DNA of 64,000 bases from sequence record MW822008.1. One strand, 5' to 3'. The position numbers and the translations under genes were made by a program. This document shows, piece by piece, positions 6,661-54,962 of the stretch (its first letter is position 1; every line of letters begins with the position of its first letter). The notes beneath the pieces were generated by a model that was not told the origin of the DNA, did no database searches, and saw nothing but the letters and a program-made list of their open reading frames with translations.

Positions 6661-7799
6661 CCCTTTTGCAAATATATGAAGATTTAATGCACTTATGTAA
6701 TACAAACGATGCATTCTTTTATGTGGATCATAAAAGTCCTGCTGGTGGCACGTATCGTGTATTCAGTTATCGTCTAGCATCATACACTGATTTCATGCAA
6801 CCAAATGCGTTGGAAACCCGTGGCTCTATGTGGGAAATTGATGAAGAAGGTGACATGATACGTTGTGCAGCACGTACAATGAAAAAGTTCTTCAATGCTT
6901 ACGAGAATCCTGCTACAATGTTCCCTGCTAACACCACATGCGATGACATTGCGGTAGTGATGCCTAAGTTGGATGGCTCGATCATCAGTACTTATCGTGA
7001 TAATGATGGTGAGATTCGTTGTAAATCACATACTGCATTGTATTCTGACCATGCGATTAACAGCACTCGACTTATTAACGAGAACCAGAATTTGTATCAG
7101 TACATCGACGAAGCGGAACGTTTAGGTTACACAGTTAATATGGAGTATACAAGCCCAGAGTACCGAATTGTATTACCATATCAGGTAGAACAACTGTTTG
7201 TACTGAACGTTCGTCATCGTGTGAGTGGTGAGTTGCTTTGTGGTAAAGCACTACGTGATAAGTTTCCATGTCTTGCACAGTACAGTACTAATATGACTGG
7301 AAAAGATATTCATCACACTTTTCCGGTACGAAATACCTTCCGTGAAAGCGTGGAGGAAGTTCATAAAATGCTTGATATTGAGGGTTTTGTGTGCATCCTA
7401 AATAATGGGACAATGTGTAAAATAAAGACTGACTGGTACAGTTCATTACATCTTACAAAAGATAGTATTATTATTGATTCTCATTTATATGAAGCAGTAT
7501 TAAATGGTTCAAGTGATGATTTAAAACAATTGTTCAGTACTGATGAATATGCTATGCAAAAGATATTAAGAATGGAACAATTGGTATTTTCGTGCTATAA
7601 TGCATTACAAGATGAAGTAGAAAGCTTCGTCAAGGAACACAAGCACTTGGAGCGAAAGGAATTCGCAATGAAGGTTCAGGAGTGTTTAACTAATGAACTG
7701 AATCGTCAGGGCTTGGCCTTTGCAATGTATAACAATAAGAAAGTTGATTACAAAGAGACTCTTATAAAATACATGAAAATTGTACTAAAGGATTTTTAG
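6657..7799 (+). CDS. rnlA: RNA ligase 1 (T4 Rnl1/gp63-like)
   Basis: KLDGS adenylation motif, RGxMWE, KKFFN, TVNMEY, EGFV and KIKTDWY motifs; 380 aa. Confidence 0.92.
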   Translation: MTLLQIYEDLMHLCNTNDAFFYVDHKSPAGGTYRVFSYRLASYTDFMQPNALETRGSMWEIDEEGDMIRCAARTMKKFFNAYENPATMFPANTTCDDIAVVMPKLDGSIISTYRDNDGEIRCKSHTALYSDHAINSTRLINENQNLYQYIDEAERLGYTVNMEYTSPEYRIVLPYQVEQLFVLNVRHRVSGELLCGKALRDKFPCLAQYSTNMTGKDIHHTFPVRNTFRESVEEVHKMLDIEGFVCILNNGTMCKIKTDWYSSLHLTKDSIIIDSHLYEAVLNGSSDDLKQLFSTDEYAMQKILRMEQLVFSCYNALQDEVESFVKEHKHLERKEFAMKVQECLTNELNRQGLAFAMYNNKKVDYKETLIKYMKIVLKDF

Positions 7800-9555: not shown

Positions 9556-9558
9556 TAC

Positions 9559-9590
9559 AAAAGGGATCATATATTGGTCCCTTTTTCTTT
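9559..9590 (+). terminator. rho-independent terminator
   Basis: AAAAGGGATCA-loop-TGGTCCCTTTTT. Confidence 0.8.
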
Positions 9591-9780
9591 TAAGGTACAT
9601 TATAGTGAATGTAACAACACAGATGTTATTACAAAAAGACTACTTAGAAAATATAGAACGATACTATAGATTGTCTTTGTATGAAAATAAGCATAAAAAT
9701 TATAGTTTTGATAAACTACTAAATTCCAGTACTGATGATTATCTATTTTCATCAATGTTTTATGTGAGAGGTTTATTATA

Positions 9781-10041
9781 ATGGATAAATTTCACACAGA
9801 TATAACACAGATAGGTAATCTTATCAATAGTCTAATTACTGATTTAGAAGAAAAGTACTTAGGTCGAAATGTATACGTAGAAATGTATGAAACATATGGT
9901 GTTATTGATATGATTTATTACAGTGCATTGAAGTGTGAAATACGTTTAACAGTATGTTTGTTTGAAAAAAATACATTCAACAGAAGTACTGCAATTCGCC
10001 AAGTTGGAGTTGATGATATAGAATTATACGAGGAACAATGA
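9781..10041 (+). CDS. small hypothetical protein, paralog family B
   Basis: LEEKYLGRNV motif. Confidence 0.7.
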   Translation: MDKFHTDITQIGNLINSLITDLEEKYLGRNVYVEMYETYGVIDMIYYSALKCEIRLTVCLFEKNTFNRSTAIRQVGVDDIELYEEQ

Positions 10042-10292
10042 TGTTTGAGCAGGACTTAGAGATATTCAAAAGTCATATTGATTACTTGACTATATTAGAA
10101 AATGATTTAACTACAAAGTACAAAGGCATTCGTGTTCTGTGCTGGTATGATGATTGGGATTATAAACGTGAACTCACGATTGATCGAATTTATTTCAGTG
10201 ACGGTGTACTAAATGTACATGGTGTAAATGATTTTGGTCATTCATATACATATTCTAATAATGCTAAATTTAAAAGGATCTACAATGAATGA
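10038..10292 (+). CDS. small hypothetical protein, paralog family B
   Basis: LTTKYKGIRV motif. Confidence 0.7.
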   Translation: MMFEQDLEIFKSHIDYLTILENDLTTKYKGIRVLCWYDDWDYKRELTIDRIYFSDGVLNVHGVNDFGHSYTYSNNAKFKRIYNE

Positions 10293-13001: not shown

Positions 13002-13745
13002 ATGAAACACTTCTTAGAAGTAACTGTACCTGATGATAAAGATTTATACATTGTAGGTGATTTGCATGGTAATGGTAAACTATGGGATGCTACAGTGAAA
13101 GAATTTGGTATTACACACAATGATTATGTTTTCAGTGTAGGTGATATTATCGACCGTGGAGAACAAAATTCAAAGCTCCTTTTTGAATTTTTGTTCGGAG
13201 AAAATCGTTACATGATTGCGGGTAATCATGAGATGATGTGCGTTGATTCGGAAACACTTCGAGATTGGTATCATTGTTGGATAAGTAATGGTGGTGATAA
13301 ATTCCTTGATGAAGTTGGAGGAACAGGCATTCAATTCTTTCGTCAGTACTTAAAGGATCTCCCTATGATTATCCAAATCAATCACCGAGGATTGAAGATT
13401 GGGTTAGTTCATGCTGGAGTTCCGTTGGAATATACAACATGGGAACGATTTGTTAATGGGACAAAATCACTTAGTGCTGATATAATTGATAAGTGCTTGT
13501 GGGATAGAAAAACATTCGATTATTGTAGAACTAATAATACATATTATGCACCTAAGTTAGATGGAGTGCATTGTGTCTTTAGTGGACATACAGCAGTTAC
13601 AGACCCACTCATTTACGGTAATCGCATTTGGATTGATAGTCAGTTCTTGACGGGTGACTTAACTCTCGCTACTCCACAAAGTGGTGGGATGAGATACTTA
13701 CGTAAAGAAAAAGATGAGTACTCATTCAATCGTTTCAAAAGGTAA
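13002..13745 (+). CDS. serine/threonine protein phosphatase (PPP / lambda NinI-like metallophosphoesterase)
   Basis: GDLHG, GDIIDRG, GNHE, HAG, WDR and GHT motifs. Confidence 0.9.
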   Translation: MKHFLEVTVPDDKDLYIVGDLHGNGKLWDATVKEFGITHNDYVFSVGDIIDRGEQNSKLLFEFLFGENRYMIAGNHEMMCVDSETLRDWYHCWISNGGDKFLDEVGGTGIQFFRQYLKDLPMIIQINHRGLKIGLVHAGVPLEYTTWERFVNGTKSLSADIIDKCLWDRKTFDYCRTNNTYYAPKLDGVHCVFSGHTAVTDPLIYGNRIWIDSQFLTGDLTLATPQSGGMRYLRKEKDEYSFNRFKR

Positions 13746-28148: not shown

Positions 28149-28178
28149 TGGGACATTATGTCCCATACATGATATAAT
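28149..28178 (+). promoter_or_regulatory. promoter with overlapping inverted repeat
   Basis: TATGGGACA-TTA-TGTCCCATA inverted repeat followed by TGATATAAT. Confidence 0.65.
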
Positions 28179-28209
28179 GTTGTTATCATACTACAGAAGG
28201 AGATATAAA

Positions 28210-28398
28210 ATGGCTAAACAACCTAAGAAAAAAGAACCAGTAGCAAAAGTTAAGAAAGAGAAAGTTATTCAATCTAAAGAACAACGTATGTACGAACAAC
28301 GTAAGAGTGAAACCCTATCCGGTCTACAAGCTCTACGCAAACAAGGTGTACTAACTCGTGCACAGTACCGTGAACTAGTAGCTCAGAAAGGTTTTTGA
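28210..28398 (+). CDS. small basic protein
   Basis: MAKQPKKKEP..., AAGGAG RBS. Confidence 0.75.
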   Translation: MAKQPKKKEPVAKVKKEKVIQSKEQRMYEQRKSETLSGLQALRKQGVLTRAQYRELVAQKGF

Positions 28399-28502
28399 TT
28401 CATTTGAAGACATATTGTGGAGTTCTTAATAAATACTTTTATAAGAATAATAATACTTTTTATTAAATTAAAAAGAACTCCATGTGTTATTTCAGTTTTT
28501 CG

Positions 28503-28528
28503 TCCCTGTCTTTTGGCAGGGATTTTTT
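28503..28528 (+). terminator. rho-independent terminator
   Basis: TCCCTGTC-TTTT-GGCAGGGA followed by a T-run. Confidence 0.75.
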
Positions 28529-28624
28529 ATATCTATATCTTGACAAAAGGAACAAATCATGAGAACATGTATTAAAGGAAGAATGACTTTCCATTAGGTT
28601 ATTTTAACTTAAAGGAGATTTCAT

Positions 28625-29182
28625 ATGTTTTTTGACCAAACATTTACGTTGTATCACGATTCTGGTAAAGTTGAGATTATTGATAATCTGTTAGAGTACA
28701 TTGCGGAACATGACGGTATAGACCGTTTCCACAGTAAGATGAAATTCGATTTAGCTGAATTCAACAAAAAGAATCGTGAAACATTTTGGAAGAACCGTTT
28801 CTATTACGAAATGTATCCAGAAAAGTTCGTAGGTTATTATCTTTGTACTGAAAAAGGATTACTTGTATCTCCTGATTTACTTATGGGTGAATACATGATA
28901 CTCTATAATGAGTACTGGGAACATAAACGTAAAGCTCGTGATAAGGAATGGCGACATAAGCGTTCGTATATGTACAAACATAACCACTCCCGATACAAGC
29001 GTCCTAAGACTCAGCAAGAGCGTCGTATGGCTTGTGCAGTACTGAAGGATGAGGGGGAACCTGAAATACGTGGAAGACGTAAGATGCGTTCATTACCATC
29101 GTATTGGGACGATATCAGAACAAGACACAGTACTGGCTGGAAATACAGTACTAAACGTAAACATCAATACAAAGGGAGCTAA
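28625..29182 (+). CDS. basic hypothetical phage protein
   Basis: AAGGAG RBS; Arg/Lys-rich C-terminus with LPSYWDD. Confidence 0.8.
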   Translation: MFFDQTFTLYHDSGKVEIIDNLLEYIAEHDGIDRFHSKMKFDLAEFNKKNRETFWKNRFYYEMYPEKFVGYYLCTEKGLLVSPDLLMGEYMILYNEYWEHKRKARDKEWRHKRSYMYKHNHSRYKRPKTQQERRMACAVLKDEGEPEIRGRRKMRSLPSYWDDIRTRHSTGWKYSTKRKHQYKGS

Positions 29183-37881: not shown

Positions 37882-40578
37882 ATGTCAAAGAAAATATATG
37901 GTGGCTTAGATGTCACACATAATGTGACAGTTAATGGTAAAAGAACAATTCAAGGAATAAATGAACAAGTTTTTGATTCCAACGGTAACTTGGAATTAGA
38001 TACTTATTCCAGAGATGAAGTACTAGATATAGTAAGTATGATGCCAATCTCCCATTATGGTTCACAAAACTATCTACCTGCGGGTGTTTCTGGGGATTTC
38101 AATGGTGCATCAGAAAACCAGTCACAACGTAGAAATAAAATTTTATTAGAAAACGATGGTACACTAGTACTTTTACGTAGTGGGACAAACGGTAGTGTTG
38201 AGGGATTATTTTATTCATATTTGGCTAACGCATTATCAGTTGATGACATGAGCCGTACAATTAACACTAGTCGTCAATACAAGCCTGGGTTTTTTGGTTC
38301 AAATAGAGTTGCGATTGGTTTATACAATACTGATCCAAATATTTTACTCGGTAGATATATTGATACTTCTAACAGTACTAATGGTTTGTTCATATCAATT
38401 ACCAATGGTACATTAGATGATAAATTGCATACTGGTTTTTTCGTTAACCAAGCAGATATATCACCTGAAGGTGGTATTGAATATGCTATGATGGCAGAAG
38501 ATGGTTCTATATATGTTTTTAACGTACTTAATGAAAATAACCAACTACAATTAGTTGTTGTAAAAGTTGTTTATAATATAAGCAATGGTACTTATACTGC
38601 AACTCGAATTACTGGATGGACTACTAAAACATTTTATAACACGACATATTCTGCACAAAATAATATGGTTATTACTAATCAGGTAACATCAACAAATATT
38701 GCTGATAAACCTTATGTGTATGTTCCACAAAATCTACGTGGTATTGGGATTTACATGACATCAATTGATTTATATGTTGCACAGCAGCCAGGAACGCAGA
38801 ATTTCCGCTTTAGAATGAACGGGGACGCTTGGTTTACAATGGCAACATATAATACACGTCCACAGCATAGTTACAGTTTTGTGTTCAATATGAGTACTAA
38901 ACAATGTACATTAGATGCGGGTAACGATATTGGTTCATATCAAGCACCATTAGTTATAACTAATACTGGTTCGGCATTAGTTCCTACTGGTAACGTTTTA
39001 AATAACGATCCATTGTATAACCATGCAAATGCAAGAAACATTTATAGTTCATATTTTTATTTGAATTCTGGTGAAGCTTTTTGTACTACATGTCCAAACT
39101 TAGCAGAACCATTACTTATGCAAAAAGCTAAGTTTCCTATTCAAATAGTTTATAGTATGCTGAATGTCCGTGCTGTACTTTCTACTGACTTCAAAGGTGG
39201 TATAGTTCGCCCGTCTTTTGGTTCAGCGGTTGGTTCATTTATTAATGGTGTAGAATTACTACCAGATAACAGTACTAAACAATATTCACGTGCATCAGGT
39301 AGTGGTGGATTTAGACCATCATATGCAGTTCATAAAAGTACTCCTAATTTTACATTTAAATCATTATCTTTAGGAACAATACAAGGTTATGAACCTACAG
39401 TTGAACGTGCTAATGTTGATGATAATGCAAATAATAGAATTTTTATTAGTAGTATTTCTGGGTCAACTGTCACAACCAATGGTGGTATTTTTATGGTTGG
39501 GCAACGTTATTCACAATCATTATCCTATGATAAAAACTTAAATGGCACAGGAATTATAAGCGTTACACAATCAGTACTGGACAATTTTAGAAATACTGAA
39601 TATGCCAAAGTTCTAAGTGATTGGAATTTATCAGCACAAGCATACCGTGATATGACACTATTTGTTCCACAACAAACAGACATTCCAGCTTTTGTTATGT
39701 TGAGTACAATTACTAATGATTATAGAAACTATATTAGAATTGCTGAAGTTAATGTCAATACTAGAGTTGGTAATATTACATCTATTACATTTAAGCGTTT
39801 AGTACTTGAGAATACGTATGGTGATAACTTTACACCAACTGGGAATGGTTCGATTGCATCTTCTTCTGTTGGTTTGACCATATATGATGGTGGTTCATTC
39901 TACTTCATTGGTGGTTCTGACCCATTATCACATCCAACAATAGGTAATACTGCAACTCATCAATTTAGAGCATATGTAACTAAATCAACTGCACAATTTA
40001 CAAGTTTTATAATTACTGGATCTCATGCCAGTTATGAACAAGGAAGTCAACCAGCAGCATTACCTGGTATTGGTTTTGGAATTTTTGAACCAATGGATTA
40101 CTCAAATAAAATGACATTCAAAAAATATGGAACAACGATTGCAGACTATAATAACTGGACTGCACAAGGTAGCCCAATTAACGTAGTATCCCAGGACGTT
40201 GCTCAAGGGTTTATTGTATATTTTACAGAGGAAACACCAGTTATTCTTTCAGGTAAGTCATTTTCACTACCAGTTTCAAATATTGATTTGAGAACTATTA
40301 AGTCTAATCCAGCAAATACAACATTTTATGTATATGTTAAATTGGAACAAGGATTGGCAAACTATTACATAACTACTGATGTTATTTCTGAAACAGGGAC
40401 AACTGCATATAATATTTTTTGGATAGGTACAATTCAAACTAATGCAATTCAAATCGAAACAATTAATATACAAAAACGTTCCCGTTTAGATATATTTGGT
40501 GCTTCACTTGAATCAGCAGGTTCATCGTTCCCAGTTAGCTACGGTCTACCATCACAAACAGGAACCATAAACTGGTAA
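37882..40578 (+). CDS. putative tail fibre / baseplate-associated structural protein A
   Basis: 898 aa, rich in Thr/Ser/Asn/Gly; paralog of 41194..43923; late promoter upstream. Confidence 0.65.
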   Translation: MSKKIYGGLDVTHNVTVNGKRTIQGINEQVFDSNGNLELDTYSRDEVLDIVSMMPISHYGSQNYLPAGVSGDFNGASENQSQRRNKILLENDGTLVLLRSGTNGSVEGLFYSYLANALSVDDMSRTINTSRQYKPGFFGSNRVAIGLYNTDPNILLGRYIDTSNSTNGLFISITNGTLDDKLHTGFFVNQADISPEGGIEYAMMAEDGSIYVFNVLNENNQLQLVVVKVVYNISNGTYTATRITGWTTKTFYNTTYSAQNNMVITNQVTSTNIADKPYVYVPQNLRGIGIYMTSIDLYVAQQPGTQNFRFRMNGDAWFTMATYNTRPQHSYSFVFNMSTKQCTLDAGNDIGSYQAPLVITNTGSALVPTGNVLNNDPLYNHANARNIYSSYFYLNSGEAFCTTCPNLAEPLLMQKAKFPIQIVYSMLNVRAVLSTDFKGGIVRPSFGSAVGSFINGVELLPDNSTKQYSRASGSGGFRPSYAVHKSTPNFTFKSLSLGTIQGYEPTVERANVDDNANNRIFISSISGSTVTTNGGIFMVGQRYSQSLSYDKNLNGTGIISVTQSVLDNFRNTEYAKVLSDWNLSAQAYRDMTLFVPQQTDIPAFVMLSTITNDYRNYIRIAEVNVNTRVGNITSITFKRLVLENTYGDNFTPTGNGSIASSSVGLTIYDGGSFYFIGGSDPLSHPTIGNTATHQFRAYVTKSTAQFTSFIITGSHASYEQGSQPAALPGIGFGIFEPMDYSNKMTFKKYGTTIADYNNWTAQGSPINVVSQDVAQGFIVYFTEETPVILSGKSFSLPVSNIDLRTIKSNPANTTFYVYVKLEQGLANYYITTDVISETGTTAYNIFWIGTIQTNAIQIETINIQKRSRLDIFGASLESAGSSFPVSYGLPSQTGTINW

Positions 40579-51643: not shown

Positions 51644-51948
51644 AAAAATTATTAGTTCCAATGATTTCTTTTTTAATTATAAGTGGGTGTGCCGAGCAAG
51701 TAAAACTACAATCCCCCGCACCAATTAAACAAGAAATTCTGTTAGAAAGATGTGATGATGATACACCTCTACCACAAAAAATTATGATTGACAAAAATGG
51801 TTTTAAAGGTTATGATGGTGCAGAAATTCTTAAAGTACTTACTCGTTGGGATGCAGTCTACAATGAATGTGCTTTAAAACACGACGCATTGATTAAAACT
51901 ATTCGTGATTTACAAGGTAAAGATATTAAAATCAATATCAAGGAATAA
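51640..51948 (+). CDS. putative outer-membrane spanin (Rz1-like lipoprotein)
   Basis: Lipobox ISGC, Pro-rich segment, YNECALKHDAL. Confidence 0.75.
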   Translation: MKKLLVPMISFLIISGCAEQVKLQSPAPIKQEILLERCDDDTPLPQKIMIDKNGFKGYDGAEILKVLTRWDAVYNECALKHDALIKTIRDLQGKDIKINIKE

Positions 51949-51949
51949 A

Positions 51950-52561
51950 ATGAACAAATATCATGTTTACTATACGACAAAATTATCACTTCTTGAAGAA
52001 TTAAATCAACGAAGTACTAAGATGAAACGCTACACTTTAAATGGTATTACTTTTCGATATTTCCCACAAAAAGTTCTTACTTTTGTTAAGAATCCAAAAT
52101 GCGTGGCATGTGGGATTGAAGCTACTGAAGTACGCATTGAACGTTCATTATGTTCTGATCCAGTATATGGTAAACCACATTTAAATGTATATGCTGTATG
52201 TGGTCTTTATGAAGTTTTAATGACAGTTGACCATAATCATCTGGCATCTAAGGGTGGACCTGATTTAGAGTCAAACTTTAATACTATGTGCTCCAGATGT
52301 AATCAACTACGTTCGAATAAAACTGAAACAGTTGATGAGTTTCTTGAGAAAGTTAAAGGTCGTAATCTTCTCCAAGAACATATGAATAATTTCTTTAATG
52401 TACAAAAAAAGAAAAATAACATTGACAAGTCGAAACTACTAGAAGAACGTAGGTTACGTCAAGAATTATGGGAAACCGATCATCTATGGCATGTTCGAGA
52501 GTTTGGTCGTCATATGAAAGCTTTGAAAAAAGAACAGAAGAAATTGAATAAACATGATTGA
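51950..52561 (+). CDS. HNH endonuclease
   Basis: CVAC ... TVDHNH.ASKGG....N...MCSRCN. Confidence 0.8.
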   Translation: MNKYHVYYTTKLSLLEELNQRSTKMKRYTLNGITFRYFPQKVLTFVKNPKCVACGIEATEVRIERSLCSDPVYGKPHLNVYAVCGLYEVLMTVDHNHLASKGGPDLESNFNTMCSRCNQLRSNKTETVDEFLEKVKGRNLLQEHMNNFFNVQKKKNNIDKSKLLEERRLRQELWETDHLWHVREFGRHMKALKKEQKKLNKHD

Positions 52562-52971: not shown

Positions 52972-53370
52972 ATGCTTAAAGAATTAGATTTTTCAAACTT
53001 AGAAATTATCAGTGCTGTAAAAAACATTTCCGATATGGGAGATGAGAAAGCAGTTCTTGTTACTATTACTTTTGTAAAAGAAAAAGATAGCTATAGCCAT
53101 TTAACTGGCATTGAAGAACTAATTCATAAAACCAATCTTGAGAATGATGGTAAACTCATCAAGCTTCAGGCTTCCTATACGCAAAAAACGTCAAATTTTA
53201 TAGACCTAAATAATGTAGTCAAGGTGGTATACAATCATCCTGAACACACATATAGGAACACGACAAGAAATGAAAATGTTGCTAACGATTCGAATATTAT
53301 CGAAGATGTTGAATTCATAAACACAATTTTTGATCGTTGTTCTAAGGATTTAAAAAAAGTATACATGTAA
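52972..53370 (+). CDS. hypothetical protein
   Basis: ATG at 52972. Confidence 0.7.
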   Translation: MLKELDFSNLEIISAVKNISDMGDEKAVLVTITFVKEKDSYSHLTGIEELIHKTNLENDGKLIKLQASYTQKTSNFIDLNNVVKVVYNHPEHTYRNTTRNENVANDSNIIEDVEFINTIFDRCSKDLKKVYM

Positions 53371-53399
53371 TGGGACATTATATGTTCCAATGATATAAT
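53371..53399 (+). promoter_or_regulatory. promoter of the candidate ncRNA
   Basis: TGGGAC-17 nt-TATAAT with extended -10 TG. Confidence 0.7.
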
Positions 53400-53676
53400 G
53401 TATATAGAAAATGACAACGGACATTGAAAAATGGACACTGAGAACCTACTTCTCTTGAAAATGTAAAGGATAGATGAGCTTTACCGTTGTAGCGAACAGC
53501 AGAAGAAACCTGTTAGAGTACTGGCATTCAAACAAACACGATGTAAGACCACGAATCACGGCGACACGGCTGTATAAAGAACTCCGATAAGCATACAGAG
53601 AGTTCCTAGATAGATGTATAAGGTTCGCACCTTACCAGATTTGCTAAGGGAGTTCAAGAATAGCGGACGCAATTTT

Positions 53677-53858
53677 TACAAGAAAGTTGCGTCCAAAATT
53701 TGAGAACAAGTACTACTTTGATCGAATAGAGTTAGTACTGAGTGCTGTTGATGAAAAGACCAGCGACCGTTGCATATGACTGCGATAGAGAGAAACCGAG
53801 CAACCCGCTTTCGCTCTCTAAATTTTGGTACAAGAAAGATCCGTCCAAAATTTGAGAA
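53677..53858 (+). repeat. 30-nt direct repeat pair (53677-53706 and 53829-53858, 2 mismatches)
   Basis: TACAAGAAAGTTGCGTCCAAAATTTGAGAA vs TACAAGAAAGATCCGTCCAAAATTTGAGAA. Confidence 0.9.
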
Positions 53859-53894
53859 ATTCGCAATTCGATAATATCCGATGCCATCATCGTC

Positions 53895-53920
53895 AAGAGA
53901 GACTTAATTGTCTCTTTTTT
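53895..53920 (+). terminator. rho-independent terminator
   Basis: AGAGAC-TTAATT-GTCTCT followed by a T-run. Confidence 0.75.
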
Positions 53921-54060
53921 ATTACCTTCATTCCCCTGCGGGGGGATGTAATAGTCCTCAACAAATCCCGTCAAGTTTTTAAAGTACATTATCATTTTCA
54001 GAAGGAACTAGTTTACGAAGTAAACGCAGTGACTTCTTGAGTTACGAGAGAACGAAGTGA

Positions 54061-54489
54061 ATGAGTAACACAACGAAAATATCCGATAAATCCGAATTAA
54101 CACAAATGTTATTCAAAGAATATTTTGAGTTTCAGATAAAAGACGAACATCAATTACCACAGCAATATTTGAAAAGAATTAAAGATCCGTCAGTAATTAC
54201 TAAAGAAACTAATTTTTATAATAGTATTTTGGATTTCGTTAAATCAGTTCATACAACAAGACCTATTGTAGTTTTGTTTTTTGATAAATCTATTCCTTTA
54301 GTAGTTCCTGAAAATGTATTTTTTATTTCAGAAACTGATTTAAATAATCAAAGTACTGTAAGTAGATTAAGAAATTGCTTACTTGTAGTATGTGATTCTT
54401 CTTTGTATAATAACAGAATACTATGGGATAGAAGTAAACGCAATGCAGTTTCGGAAATGAATCCTGAAATTACCTTTATTATTAACTAA
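54061..54489 (+). CDS. hypothetical protein
   Basis: ORF track. Confidence 0.65.
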   Translation: MSNTTKISDKSELTQMLFKEYFEFQIKDEHQLPQQYLKRIKDPSVITKETNFYNSILDFVKSVHTTRPIVVLFFDKSIPLVVPENVFFISETDLNNQSTVSRLRNCLLVVCDSSLYNNRILWDRSKRNAVSEMNPEITFIIN

Positions 54490-54521: not shown

Positions 54522-54962
54522 ATGGAAGATATTAATGATTTACGACACGTAATGGACTTTATCGGAAGTACTGAAGAAGATAATTCATATGATGAAGTAC
54601 TATTAACTTTTATTGAAAATAGTTTGTTTTTAAGTTCTGCTGCACATAACTGGCACTTACAATGTCATTTTTATACAAAGCATTTACAATTAGATGAACT
54701 ATATAAAGAATTACCAGAATATGTAGACGCATTTGTTGAAGGTATCATGAATAATCGTGGTGCTTTGCAAGTTGGGACTGGTAATAGTTATCGTTTTACA
54801 CCAATTGAAGATTGTGTACCAATTCTTGAAGAATATGTTGAGCAATGCAGAGCAATTCATGATATGCTTGAAGAATCGGGTGATTACGGCAGTGTAAACA
54901 CATTAGAAGATATTATGAGTTTTGTTGAAGGAACACTTTACAAACTTAAAGTTTTACAATAA
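54522..54962 (+). CDS. ferritin/Dps-like four-helix protein (DUF5856-like)
   Basis: AHNWHLQ...KHLQLDELY..LPEYVDAFVE; CTAAATA upstream; AAGGAG RBS. Confidence 0.75.
   Translation: MEDINDLRHVMDFIGSTEEDNSYDEVLLTFIENSLFLSSAAHNWHLQCHFYTKHLQLDELYKELPEYVDAFVEGIMNNRGALQVGTGNSYRFTPIEDCVPILEEYVEQCRAIHDMLEESGDYGSVNTLEDIMSFVEGTLYKLKVLQ

Follow-up and report, generated by a model that had tools for sequence, protein, structure and literature searches.

A large structured RNA, probably of a new family, in Rak2-like jumbo phages and in chromosomal islands of their hosts

The window analyzed here is a single stretch of 64,000 nt (64 kb) from sequence record MW822008.1. The region studied within it is 100% identical to the minus strand of Escherichia phage PBECO4 (bp 38,017-38,576) and 97% identical to phage 121Q, both of which belong to Asteriusvirus, a group of Rak2-like jumbo myoviruses with genomes of approximately 350 kb. 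The upstream gene has its stop codon at 53370, and the next start codon is at 54061. The 690 nt that separate them (53371-54060) are free of ORFs of at least 90 aa in both strands and form the longest such gap in the window, as a sequence-only reading of the same DNA had stated, with the runner-up at 9556-10227. The gap is richer in G+C (40.4%) than its flanks (31.7% and 29.1%) and the window as a whole (33.4%), again in agreement with that reading, and the internal repeat that it had reported is real, with a length of 38 nt and 89% identity between copies (53671-706 and 53821-858). Folded as a single sequence, the RNA of this locus is more stable than shuffled sequences (MFE z-score -4.1).

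The gap opens with a predicted early-type promoter on the plus strand (53371-53399), made up of TGGGACA at 53371-77 and the extended -10 element TGATATAAT at 53391-99. A promoter scan described this site as GGGACA-16-TATAAT with an extended -10 TG and 10 of 12 matches; in its hexamers, its spacing (within 16-18 nt) and its TG it has the features expected of a sigma70-type promoter, and it places the predicted +1 at approximately 53406. The layout TGRRACA...TGnTATAAT is found upstream of all aligned copies of the RNA. Sites of the same promoter class also occur at 13457 and 28149 in the window; a second non-coding RNA behind the 28149 site was considered and rejected, as a small basic ORF is located there. 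Toward the other end of the gap (plus strand, 53897-53921), a G+C-containing hairpin (53898-903/53910-15) directly 5' of a U run has the form of an intrinsic terminator and is predicted to act as one. AGAGAC pairs with GTCTCT, the stem is extended to 9 bp in the MFE fold, and U6 follows. The hairpin was not listed by a simple scan of the locus, though it is visible in both the sequence and the MFE fold. It is present in 26 of 46 aligned copies and covaries among those 26 (helix 17).

Distant blastn searches identified this stretch in 72 phage records, in most of which it is unannotated. Nucleotide identity is approximately 70% in Cronobacter phage GAP32, Pectobacterium phage CBB, Xanthomonas phage XbC2, Yersinia phage fHe-Yen9-04 and Serratia phage BF, as well as in phages of Erwinia, Salmonella and Klebsiella. 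The genes that flank the RNA vary by genus, and each genome keeps a gene-free gap of 0.7-0.9 kb. Conservation at the locus exceeds that of the neighboring genes, which is the general pattern of a structured non-coding RNA, and the aligned relatives share long invariant blocks.

For covariation analysis, 46 distinct full units were aligned with MAFFT, and helices from a covariation scan were fixed in window coordinates. A total of 82 pairs in 18 helices entered the formal count; P6 and P8 were excluded from it because of shifts in the alignment, which blur P6, P8 and P13 (P8 and P13 were judged by eye or in part). Standard pairs occupy 95.7% of helix cells, compared with 77.0 ± 0.4% in shuffled controls and 37-44% in controls with slid partners. 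Two-sided changes affect 56 of the 82 pairs (643 cells, compared with 178 in shuffles), the covariation score is 0.476 (0.161 when shuffled), and none of 500 shuffles matched the observed values. Covariation among homologues, which the sequence-only reading had suggested as a check, is thus observed. Helix cells contain 192 G.U pairs and 26 A.C pairs, indicating that the plus strand is the RNA. On this comparative evidence, the unit is under RNA-level selection on the plus strand over its whole length, and its RNA folds into three domains, which invariant strands join and a minimum of five pseudoknot-type pairings hold together; the five that were identified (PK1-PK5) cross other helices.

The 5' domain (plus strand, 53406-53495; covariation helices 1-3) contains P1 (53414-20/53484-90), P2 (53451-56/53466-70), which closes a conserved GAAAAUGUA loop, and PK1 (53478-80/53491-93), a small hairpin whose loop contains the 3' strand of P1, thus forming a pseudoknot. 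P1 is the ACAACGG/CCGTTGT stem found by eye in the sequence-only reading, and six of its seven pairs change on both sides. The GTAAAG/CTTTAC stem of that reading is contradicted, as P2 and the P1/PK1 knot take up the bases that would form it. The central domain (plus strand, 53496-53660; helices 4-9) is built from P3 (53496-500/53569-73), P4 (53510-13/53558-61), which encloses a variable hairpin, P5 (53579-84/53600-05) and P6 (53619-23/53630-34). Two pseudoknot-type pairings belong to it: PK2 (53564-66/53615-17) and PK3, between the P5 loop (53590-93) and 53642-45, which shows further covariation in the island copies described below. It also includes an invariant UAAGGGAG at 53645-52. Both GAACTC/GAGTTC (P5), in which all six pairs change on both sides, and the TAAGGT-TCGC-ACCTTA stem (P6), in which TAAGG/CCTTA is backed by covariation outside the formal count, had been recognized earlier.

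Between the central and 3' domains lies a variable peripheral hairpin module (plus strand, 53664-53706), which is copy 1 of what had been called a 30-nt repeat and is missing in several paralogue types; the peripheral repeat module as such is absent in some types and present once or twice in others. Two further stems of the sequence-only reading, a 12-bp stem at 53665-94 and AAATTTTGG/CCAAAATTT, are lineage-specific inserts that belong to the peripheral repeat module. The 3' domain (plus strand, 53707-53896; helices 10-16) comprises P8 (53709-13/53735-39), P8b (53715-19/53728-32), P9 (53744-47/53761-64), P10 (53781-85/53861-65), P11 (53788-92/53808-12), P12 (53815-18/53854-57), which encloses repeat module 2 (53820-58), and P13 (53879-83/53888-92), which is followed by CGUCAAG. 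PK4 pairs the P8b loop AUCGAAU (53721-27) with AUUCGAU (53866-72), 140 nt downstream, and all 7 bp covary. PK5 pairs GUUGC (53769-73) with GCAAC (53800-04) and takes the form GUUGN with N'CAAC across copies. A TAGAGAG/CTCTCTA stem proposed in this domain is contradicted by covarying helices, in which the partner of GAGAG is CTTTC and that of TCTC is GAGA at 53854-57.

Could the locus contain no RNA gene, and instead be a protein gene that has decayed or is very short, or an element that acts purely as DNA, such as a cluster of protein-binding sites or a packaging signal? Several GenBank records do annotate small hypothetical CDSs across it. On the minus strand of the window there are ORFs of 87 aa (53732-53995) and 67 aa (53235-53438), and 76% of copies have a minus-strand ORF of at least 40 aa over some column of the alignment. 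These ORFs open in three different frames among relatives, however, which marks them as non-coding, and the indels in the alignment are not multiples of three. The compensatory double changes in 56 pairs, together with the excess of G.U over A.C, are a signature of RNA and neither of DNA nor of protein. We regard this explanation as very improbable; the possibility of a translated or degraded gene, which the sequence-only reading had named as a finding that would count against an RNA, was not upheld.

Known RNA families were searched with Rfam 15, which includes GOLLD, ROOL, OLE, HEARO, RNase P, 6S, tmRNA, group I/II introns and hammerhead. At the gathering score there was no match in the whole window; at E ≤ 10, positions 53200-54200 gave only chance matches of the snoRNA/miRNA type, far below threshold, and none to the GOLLD or ROOL models. 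ARAGORN identified no tRNA or tmRNA genes in the window. The earlier reading had been unable to match the sequence to tmRNA, RNase P, 6S or tRNA and had recommended the Rfam comparison, which yields no relevant family. A hammerhead ribozyme, which has an invariant CUGANGA and GAAA core and three helices, was considered at 53472-53496 (GAUGAG...CGAA) and rejected because the C3/U4 positions vary among copies (UA, CA, UG, GA, AC) and Rfam gives no match. A kink-turn at the same positions was also rejected; for both readings, the core is variable and a canonical flanking stem is missing. Three RNA-seq-defined transcripts of the distant relative PA5oct (ncRNA001, ncRNA002 and ncRNA004) were also rejected as homologues, as they have no nhmmer similarity to the RNA and lack its invariant motifs. 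Full-text literature searches found no description of this RNA and no transcriptome of Rak2-like enterobacterial phages. Based on conservation without a reading frame, strong covariation and the G.U bias of the plus strand, we consider it highly probable (approximately 0.9) that the locus encodes a functional structured RNA of a new, previously undescribed family, as the sequence-only reading had supposed.

The boundaries originally given to this RNA (approximately 515 nt) are too narrow, as conserved, RNA-constrained sequence continues to approximately 54055. In the alignment of relatives, conserved sequence extends beyond the terminator, through CATTCCCCTGCGGGGGGATG...CAACAAATCYCGTCA, as far as the next gene. 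No part of the unit varies less than a 3' element (plus strand, 53926-53975; helix 18) that consists of P14 (CCCC 53933-36/GGGG 53941-44) and the tail AUGUAAUAGUCCUCAACAAAUCCCGUCAAG. This C4/G6 hairpin and its tail are present downstream of the terminator site in all copies, and one-sided C-to-U changes in P14 retain G.U pairs, an RNA-level signature. The element occurs once in the 64-kb window, at the RNA locus, and was for this reason rejected as a general promoter class. T4-late-like TATAAAT boxes are found 3' of it in many copies and are absent in the window and in the islands. The element is followed, up to the start codon at 54061, by a downstream module (plus strand, 53976-54055) with an AT-rich linker and then hairpins. 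In other copies the linker precedes two hairpins, a long one that is nearly perfect and a small one that has a GAA-type loop and a stem that covaries by eye. The module in the window is homologous to these two hairpins and contains a GTTTAC-GAA-GTAAAC hairpin (approximately 54011-25) and an ACTTC/GAAGT hairpin (approximately 54032-58). Covariation of the downstream hairpins, judged solely by eye, includes CATTC/GAATG, CAATC/GATTG, CTTGC/GCAAG and TGCTC/GAGCA. The order of hairpin/U run, C4/G6 hairpin and AT-rich linker is conserved. Because modules past the terminator are conserved and constrained as RNA, the functional unit here would extend over approximately 650 nt (53406 to approximately 54055). 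The RNA is predicted to be about 515 nt long if it ends at the terminator, and about 650 nt long if the conserved 3' modules are included. Conservation past the terminator may reflect read-through in some transcripts or a second start, or the long hairpin may be a processing site.

The RNA family is multi-copy. When IMG/VR was scanned for the invariant motif GACCGTTG-N-CAACCCGCTT, several matches were obtained per jumbo phage genome, and a second scan with the 3' element, together with nhmmer, identified further copies that lack the first motif. The window has one copy, as self-BLAST, the motif search and nhmmer found no others in its 64 kb. In Mimasvirus and Eneladusvirus there are five copies per genome, on one strand and evenly spaced: at approximately 35.1, 98.8, 177.5, 261.5 and 340.7 kb of 358.7 kb in GAP32, at 32.3, 94.3, 174.4, 258.1 and 336.3 kb of 378.4 kb in CBB, and at closely similar positions in fHe-Yen9-04 and BF. 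The probability that five random points on a circle have a smallest gap of at least 0.148 is approximately 0.005, from (1-5a)^4, and since the GAP32/CBB-type genomes are syntenic, this even spacing counts as one observation. Asteriusvirus genomes have three unevenly spaced copies (in 121Q, at approximately 192.8, 247.5 and 326.6 kb of 348.5 kb), and the 121Q copy at approximately 247.5 kb is the orthologue of that in the window. Paralogues are 60-75% identical and retain the core. Each paralogue type holds its own synteny across genera; the duplications are therefore old, and all copies have been retained. For example, one type adjoins a DNA methyltransferase cluster, while another is located between endonuclease VII and baseplate hub genes with its neighbors on the opposite strand. 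B- and C-type copies have no terminator, run directly into a gene and end at a Shine-Dalgarno sequence. The D-type copies (endonuclease VII locus) and the island copies have no co-oriented gene immediately downstream.

A motif scan of bacterial genomes gave mostly chance matches, with two true loci among at least 120. In an Enterobacteriaceae MAG, the RNA lies in DNA of 27-41% G+C that abuts thiM/thiD (57-67% G+C), where it is convergent with the gene for a CI-like S24 repressor. A look-up of this repressor identified six versions of a thiM-type island of approximately 9 kb, all six of which carry the RNA. The gene order of this island is integrase, variable cargo, resolvase, LprI, hypothetical protein, Ner/SfsB-like regulator, CI-like repressor, RNA and thiM, and its cargo is either TIR and a STAND NTPase, nSTAND3, or HamA and a helicase. 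A Buttiauxella MAG and approximately nine metagenome contigs contain a related island with the same backbone. A third, different island is located beside ffs in 2 of 5,426 complete E. coli genomes (LR-29-1 and EEC_W5); its copy of the RNA is full (414 bits), has its own promoter, is left unannotated by PGAP and shares 81% identity with the D-type copy in Serratia phage BF. The islands encode an integrase and CI-like and Ner-like regulators, and no replication or packaging genes were recognized in them. In all three types, the RNA points into the island. The island copies, found in at least three kinds of island in Enterobacterales chromosomes, are single and full-length and keep every helix via compensatory changes. 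They are 74-93% identical to each other and approximately 80% identical to the nearest phage copies, and in a tree they are intermingled with paralogues from a single jumbo phage lineage. This implies that the RNA was captured repeatedly and then came under purifying selection in the islands. With considerable doubt, we put forward the possibility that the RNA unit physically links the parties to a three-way conflict. Islands with anti-phage cargo would have captured different paralogues at least three times (thiM-, Buttiauxella- and ffs-type) and would use them in one of two ways: to be copied or packaged by the infecting phage, with the RNA as part of a structured, RNA-dependent replication origin, or as a decoy that starves the phage of a factor binding this RNA. 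In either case, no earlier RNA-based handle would be known that connects jumbo phages with satellite-like or defense islands. The sequence-only reading did not include the multi-copy family, the extension of the unit past the terminator or the island copies.

Of the functions that could be assigned to this RNA, we tentatively favor that of a particle acting in trans, to which we would give somewhat less than an even chance; an origin transcript ranks second and a cis-acting leader third. A host-type (sigma70, extended -10) promoter of the early type would drive the RNA early in infection, and it would be released as a discrete, stable and compact particle, by the terminator or, in copies without one, by cleavage at the long perfect hairpin after the 3' element. 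It would then act in trans as a protein-binding scaffold, or as a cofactor of some factor produced or required by Rak2-like phages, with the island copies as mimics that compete with or exploit this interaction. The roles suggested by the sequence-only reading (scaffold, decoy or switch) are likewise conjectural. GOLLD and ROOL, which are large, ornate, phage-borne RNAs, act as folded particles (PMC12286853). The trans-acting particle would fit the RNA-level constraint on the whole unit, its structural complexity and the GOLLD/ROOL precedent, and constraint that continues through the 3' element and the downstream hairpins suits a processed RNA better than a DNA site. Three observations stand against it: the even, co-oriented spacing of five copies in Mimasvirus and Eneladusvirus is not explained, the terminator-less B- and C-type copies are formally 5' leaders, and the most conserved element is located 3' of the terminator.

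The second explanation, which we consider unlikely, is an origin transcript made by host RNA polymerase from the early promoter, whose hybridized 3' end is processed to a leading-strand primer as in ColE1 RNA II or T4 oriF/oriG. The hybrid would be formed by the G6 run on the non-template strand and then the AT-rich linker, and islands with a captured unit would be amplified, and perhaps packaged, upon phage infection. Same-strand copies at regular intervals (GAP32, CBB, fHe-Yen9-04 and BF) would suit such a role, as would a promoter that requires only host polymerase, the conserved order of hairpin/U run, C4/G6 hairpin and AT-rich linker, and islands that lack recognizable replication genes and into which the RNA is directed in each type. 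T4 provides a precedent, with at least five origins primed by promoter transcripts and origin plasmids that replicate in infected cells (PMC3016281). For these R-loop origins, however, a promoter and an unwinding element suffice and no RNA structure is required (PMC3016281), while the RNA described here is under RNA-level selection that extends downstream of the presumed priming site. Where a terminator is present, it would free the RNA ahead of the G run, and Asteriusvirus has just three copies at uneven intervals. No RNA I-like antisense promoter was found, the minus-strand promoter-like sites facing away from the RNA, and the cumulative GC skew, which is monotonic across the window with no change at the locus, is uninformative as an origin signal. 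The third explanation, which we find less probable again, is a cis-acting leader of an early operon: the nascent RNA would act on the polymerase transcribing it, by antitermination (as in HK022 put) or by attenuation controlled by a ligand or factor, and its fold would decide whether transcription passes through the terminator into the downstream genes. The series of promoter, RNA, terminator and co-oriented small genes found here and at the A-type copies of other genera fits a leader, the B and C types are true 5' UTRs, and the island copies, convergent with the CI-like repressor, are in sense with the Ner-like operon beyond it. On this model, read-through in the islands and at the endonuclease VII/baseplate locus would be antisense to the convergent genes. 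The D-type and island copies, however, lack a directly downstream co-oriented gene. The invariant 3' element is also positioned past the terminator, the terminator arms vary and have no covarying anti-terminator partner that could be found by eye, and the RNA is, to our knowledge, five- to ten-fold above the size of any known antitermination or riboswitch leader.

The RNA is probably important in function. Very few classes of large RNA with a complex fold are known in bacteria and phages, and all of these have proved to be ribozymes, ribonucleoprotein cores, guide RNAs or self-assembling particles. Comparative support in this case is unusually clean, as it draws on over 100 distinct copies and on five contacts of the pseudoknot type. 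The RNA is present in cultivable coliphages (PBECO4, 121Q and phAPEC6, as well as Sharanji, which grows on E. coli K-12 MG1655), making genetics and cryo-EM directly feasible. The multiple copies, their spacing and the repeated acquisition by islands suggest that it is central to how jumbo phages replicate or take over the host, and that islands may have a new means to sense, exploit or block such phages. As a practical matter, many GenBank records contain spurious small genes annotated across the RNA.

The islands, as distinct from the RNA, resemble the minimal satellites of virulent phages called PICMI (PMC10803314) and P4-like defense hotspots in being small and integrase-bearing, with swappable anti-phage cargo and no capsid genes, and in occurring in hosts of large virulent myoviruses. 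They differ in their backbone (CI-like S24 repressor, Ner/SfsB-like regulator, LprI and resolvase, with no primase or AlpA found) and in that their sole link to the phage is the shared RNA gene. The RNA itself shares with ColE1 RNA II and T4 oriF/oriG (PMC3016281) a host-polymerase promoter, a transcript (here predicted) of approximately 0.5 kb, a 3' G run with an AT-rich stretch, the occurrence of several units per phage genome and carriage by elements without replication genes. It differs in that no antisense regulator of the RNA I type was found at the locus, that T4 origins do not depend on an RNA fold, and that its own RNA-level constraint extends past the presumed priming site. A put-like antitermination leader is approximately 70 nt long and consists of two hairpins between a promoter and terminators, upstream of co-oriented genes. 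Similar to HK022 put RNA and other cis-acting leaders of this kind, the RNA at this locus heads a gene cluster, is preceded by an early promoter and followed by a terminator, and would need host polymerase only. It departs from a put-like leader in size, being approximately ten times larger (515-650 nt), in having a module after the terminator, and in gene context, as some copies (D-type and island) have no downstream co-oriented genes. With GOLLD and ROOL (PMC12286853), it has in common that it is a strongly covarying, pseudoknot-rich non-coding RNA of several hundred nt, carried by phages and mobile elements and equipped with its own promoter. Unlike them, it matches neither covariance model (E ≤ 10) and has a different architecture, it occurs as three to five diverged paralogues per genome at conserved positions, it is confined to Rak2-like jumbo phages of Enterobacterales and the chromosomal islands of their hosts, and it does not have a tRNA neighborhood. 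The RNA resembles the large ornate phage RNAs in kind and differs from them in its architecture, its multiple copies at conserved positions and its sharing with defense islands.

In several GenBank records, including those of SHEFM2K, BAU.Micro_ELP-22, the Salmonella phages SD-x and 121Q (gene 516), four to five tiny "hypothetical protein" CDSs span the RNA; these annotations are almost certainly spurious. Every copy of the RNA contains two occurrences of the heptamer YCGUCAR, the first located just before the position of the terminator hairpin (window 53890-53896) and the second at the end of the conserved 3' element (window 53969-53975). The two heptamers might together form a paired site for protein binding, or might mark a site of processing. 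A separate feature was observed in the B-type copies, the phage paralogues that run into a gene without a terminator at the 3' end: after the -10 box and ahead of the RNA body, these carry a terminator-like hairpin followed by six U residues (GGACAG...CTGTCCTTTTTT), as at bp 6730-6775 of locus L020 and bp 2380-2420 of locus L005 (coordinates counted within each locus).

Promoters of the same class as that of the RNA (TGGGACA-N14-TGATATAAT) are also found at window 13457-13486 and 28149-28178, and this sequence is probably the phage early promoter consensus. A second ncRNA behind the latter promoter (window 28185-28630) was considered and rejected: at the start of the gap, a Shine-Dalgarno sequence precedes a short ORF encoding a very basic product (MAKQPKKKEPVAKVKKEKV...), and strong hairpins follow, one of them terminator-like (GUCCCUGUC...GGCAGGGAUUUUUU). 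The second-largest gap in the window without an ORF of at least 90 aa is the 672 nt at 9556-10227. Two genes upstream of the RNA is an HNH homing endonuclease ORF (window 51905-52561), a designation it also has in the 121Q and A4 annotations. The related coliphage Turkey5, which has the same gene order, carries an unnamed ORF at this position. The operon downstream of the RNA includes a Dps-like gene (window 54522-54962), named "starvation-inducible DNA-binding protein" in 121Q and "DpsA" in Turkey5.

In Enterobacteriaceae chromosomes, an integrative island of approximately 9 kb adjoins thiM. Its backbone encodes an integrase, a resolvase, LprI, a Ner-like regulator and a CI-like repressor, accompanied by exchangeable defence cargo (TIR with a STAND NTPase, nSTAND3, or a Hachiman-like HamA with a helicase). 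Each thiM-type island seen (loci L165 and L207-L212) carries one full copy of the RNA, convergent with the CI-like repressor gene; examples are L165 6395-7030 and, on the minus strand, L209 10805-11406. The same backbone recurs in a second arrangement in Buttiauxella (RNA at L116 2856-3395) and several metagenome contigs (L220, L224, L231, L235, L240, L269, L278 and L279), in the order integrase, RNA, CI-like repressor, Ner-like regulator, 286-aa protein, LprI and resolvase.

A different RNA-bearing island adjoins ffs (the 4.5S RNA gene) in E. coli LR-29-1 and EEC_W5; it contains an IS3 element, an integrase fragment, DUF4326, DUF488 and dual-OB genes and a recombinase gene. Within a 1.4-kb gap of this island lies an unannotated full-length RNA copy that has a promoter of its own, TGGGAT...TGTGATATAAT (in LR-29-1, L347 6999-7581, corresponding to NZ_AP027515.1 ~3,478,975-3,479,557). 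Among 5,426 complete E. coli genomes, these two strains are the only ones with the ffs-type island RNA.
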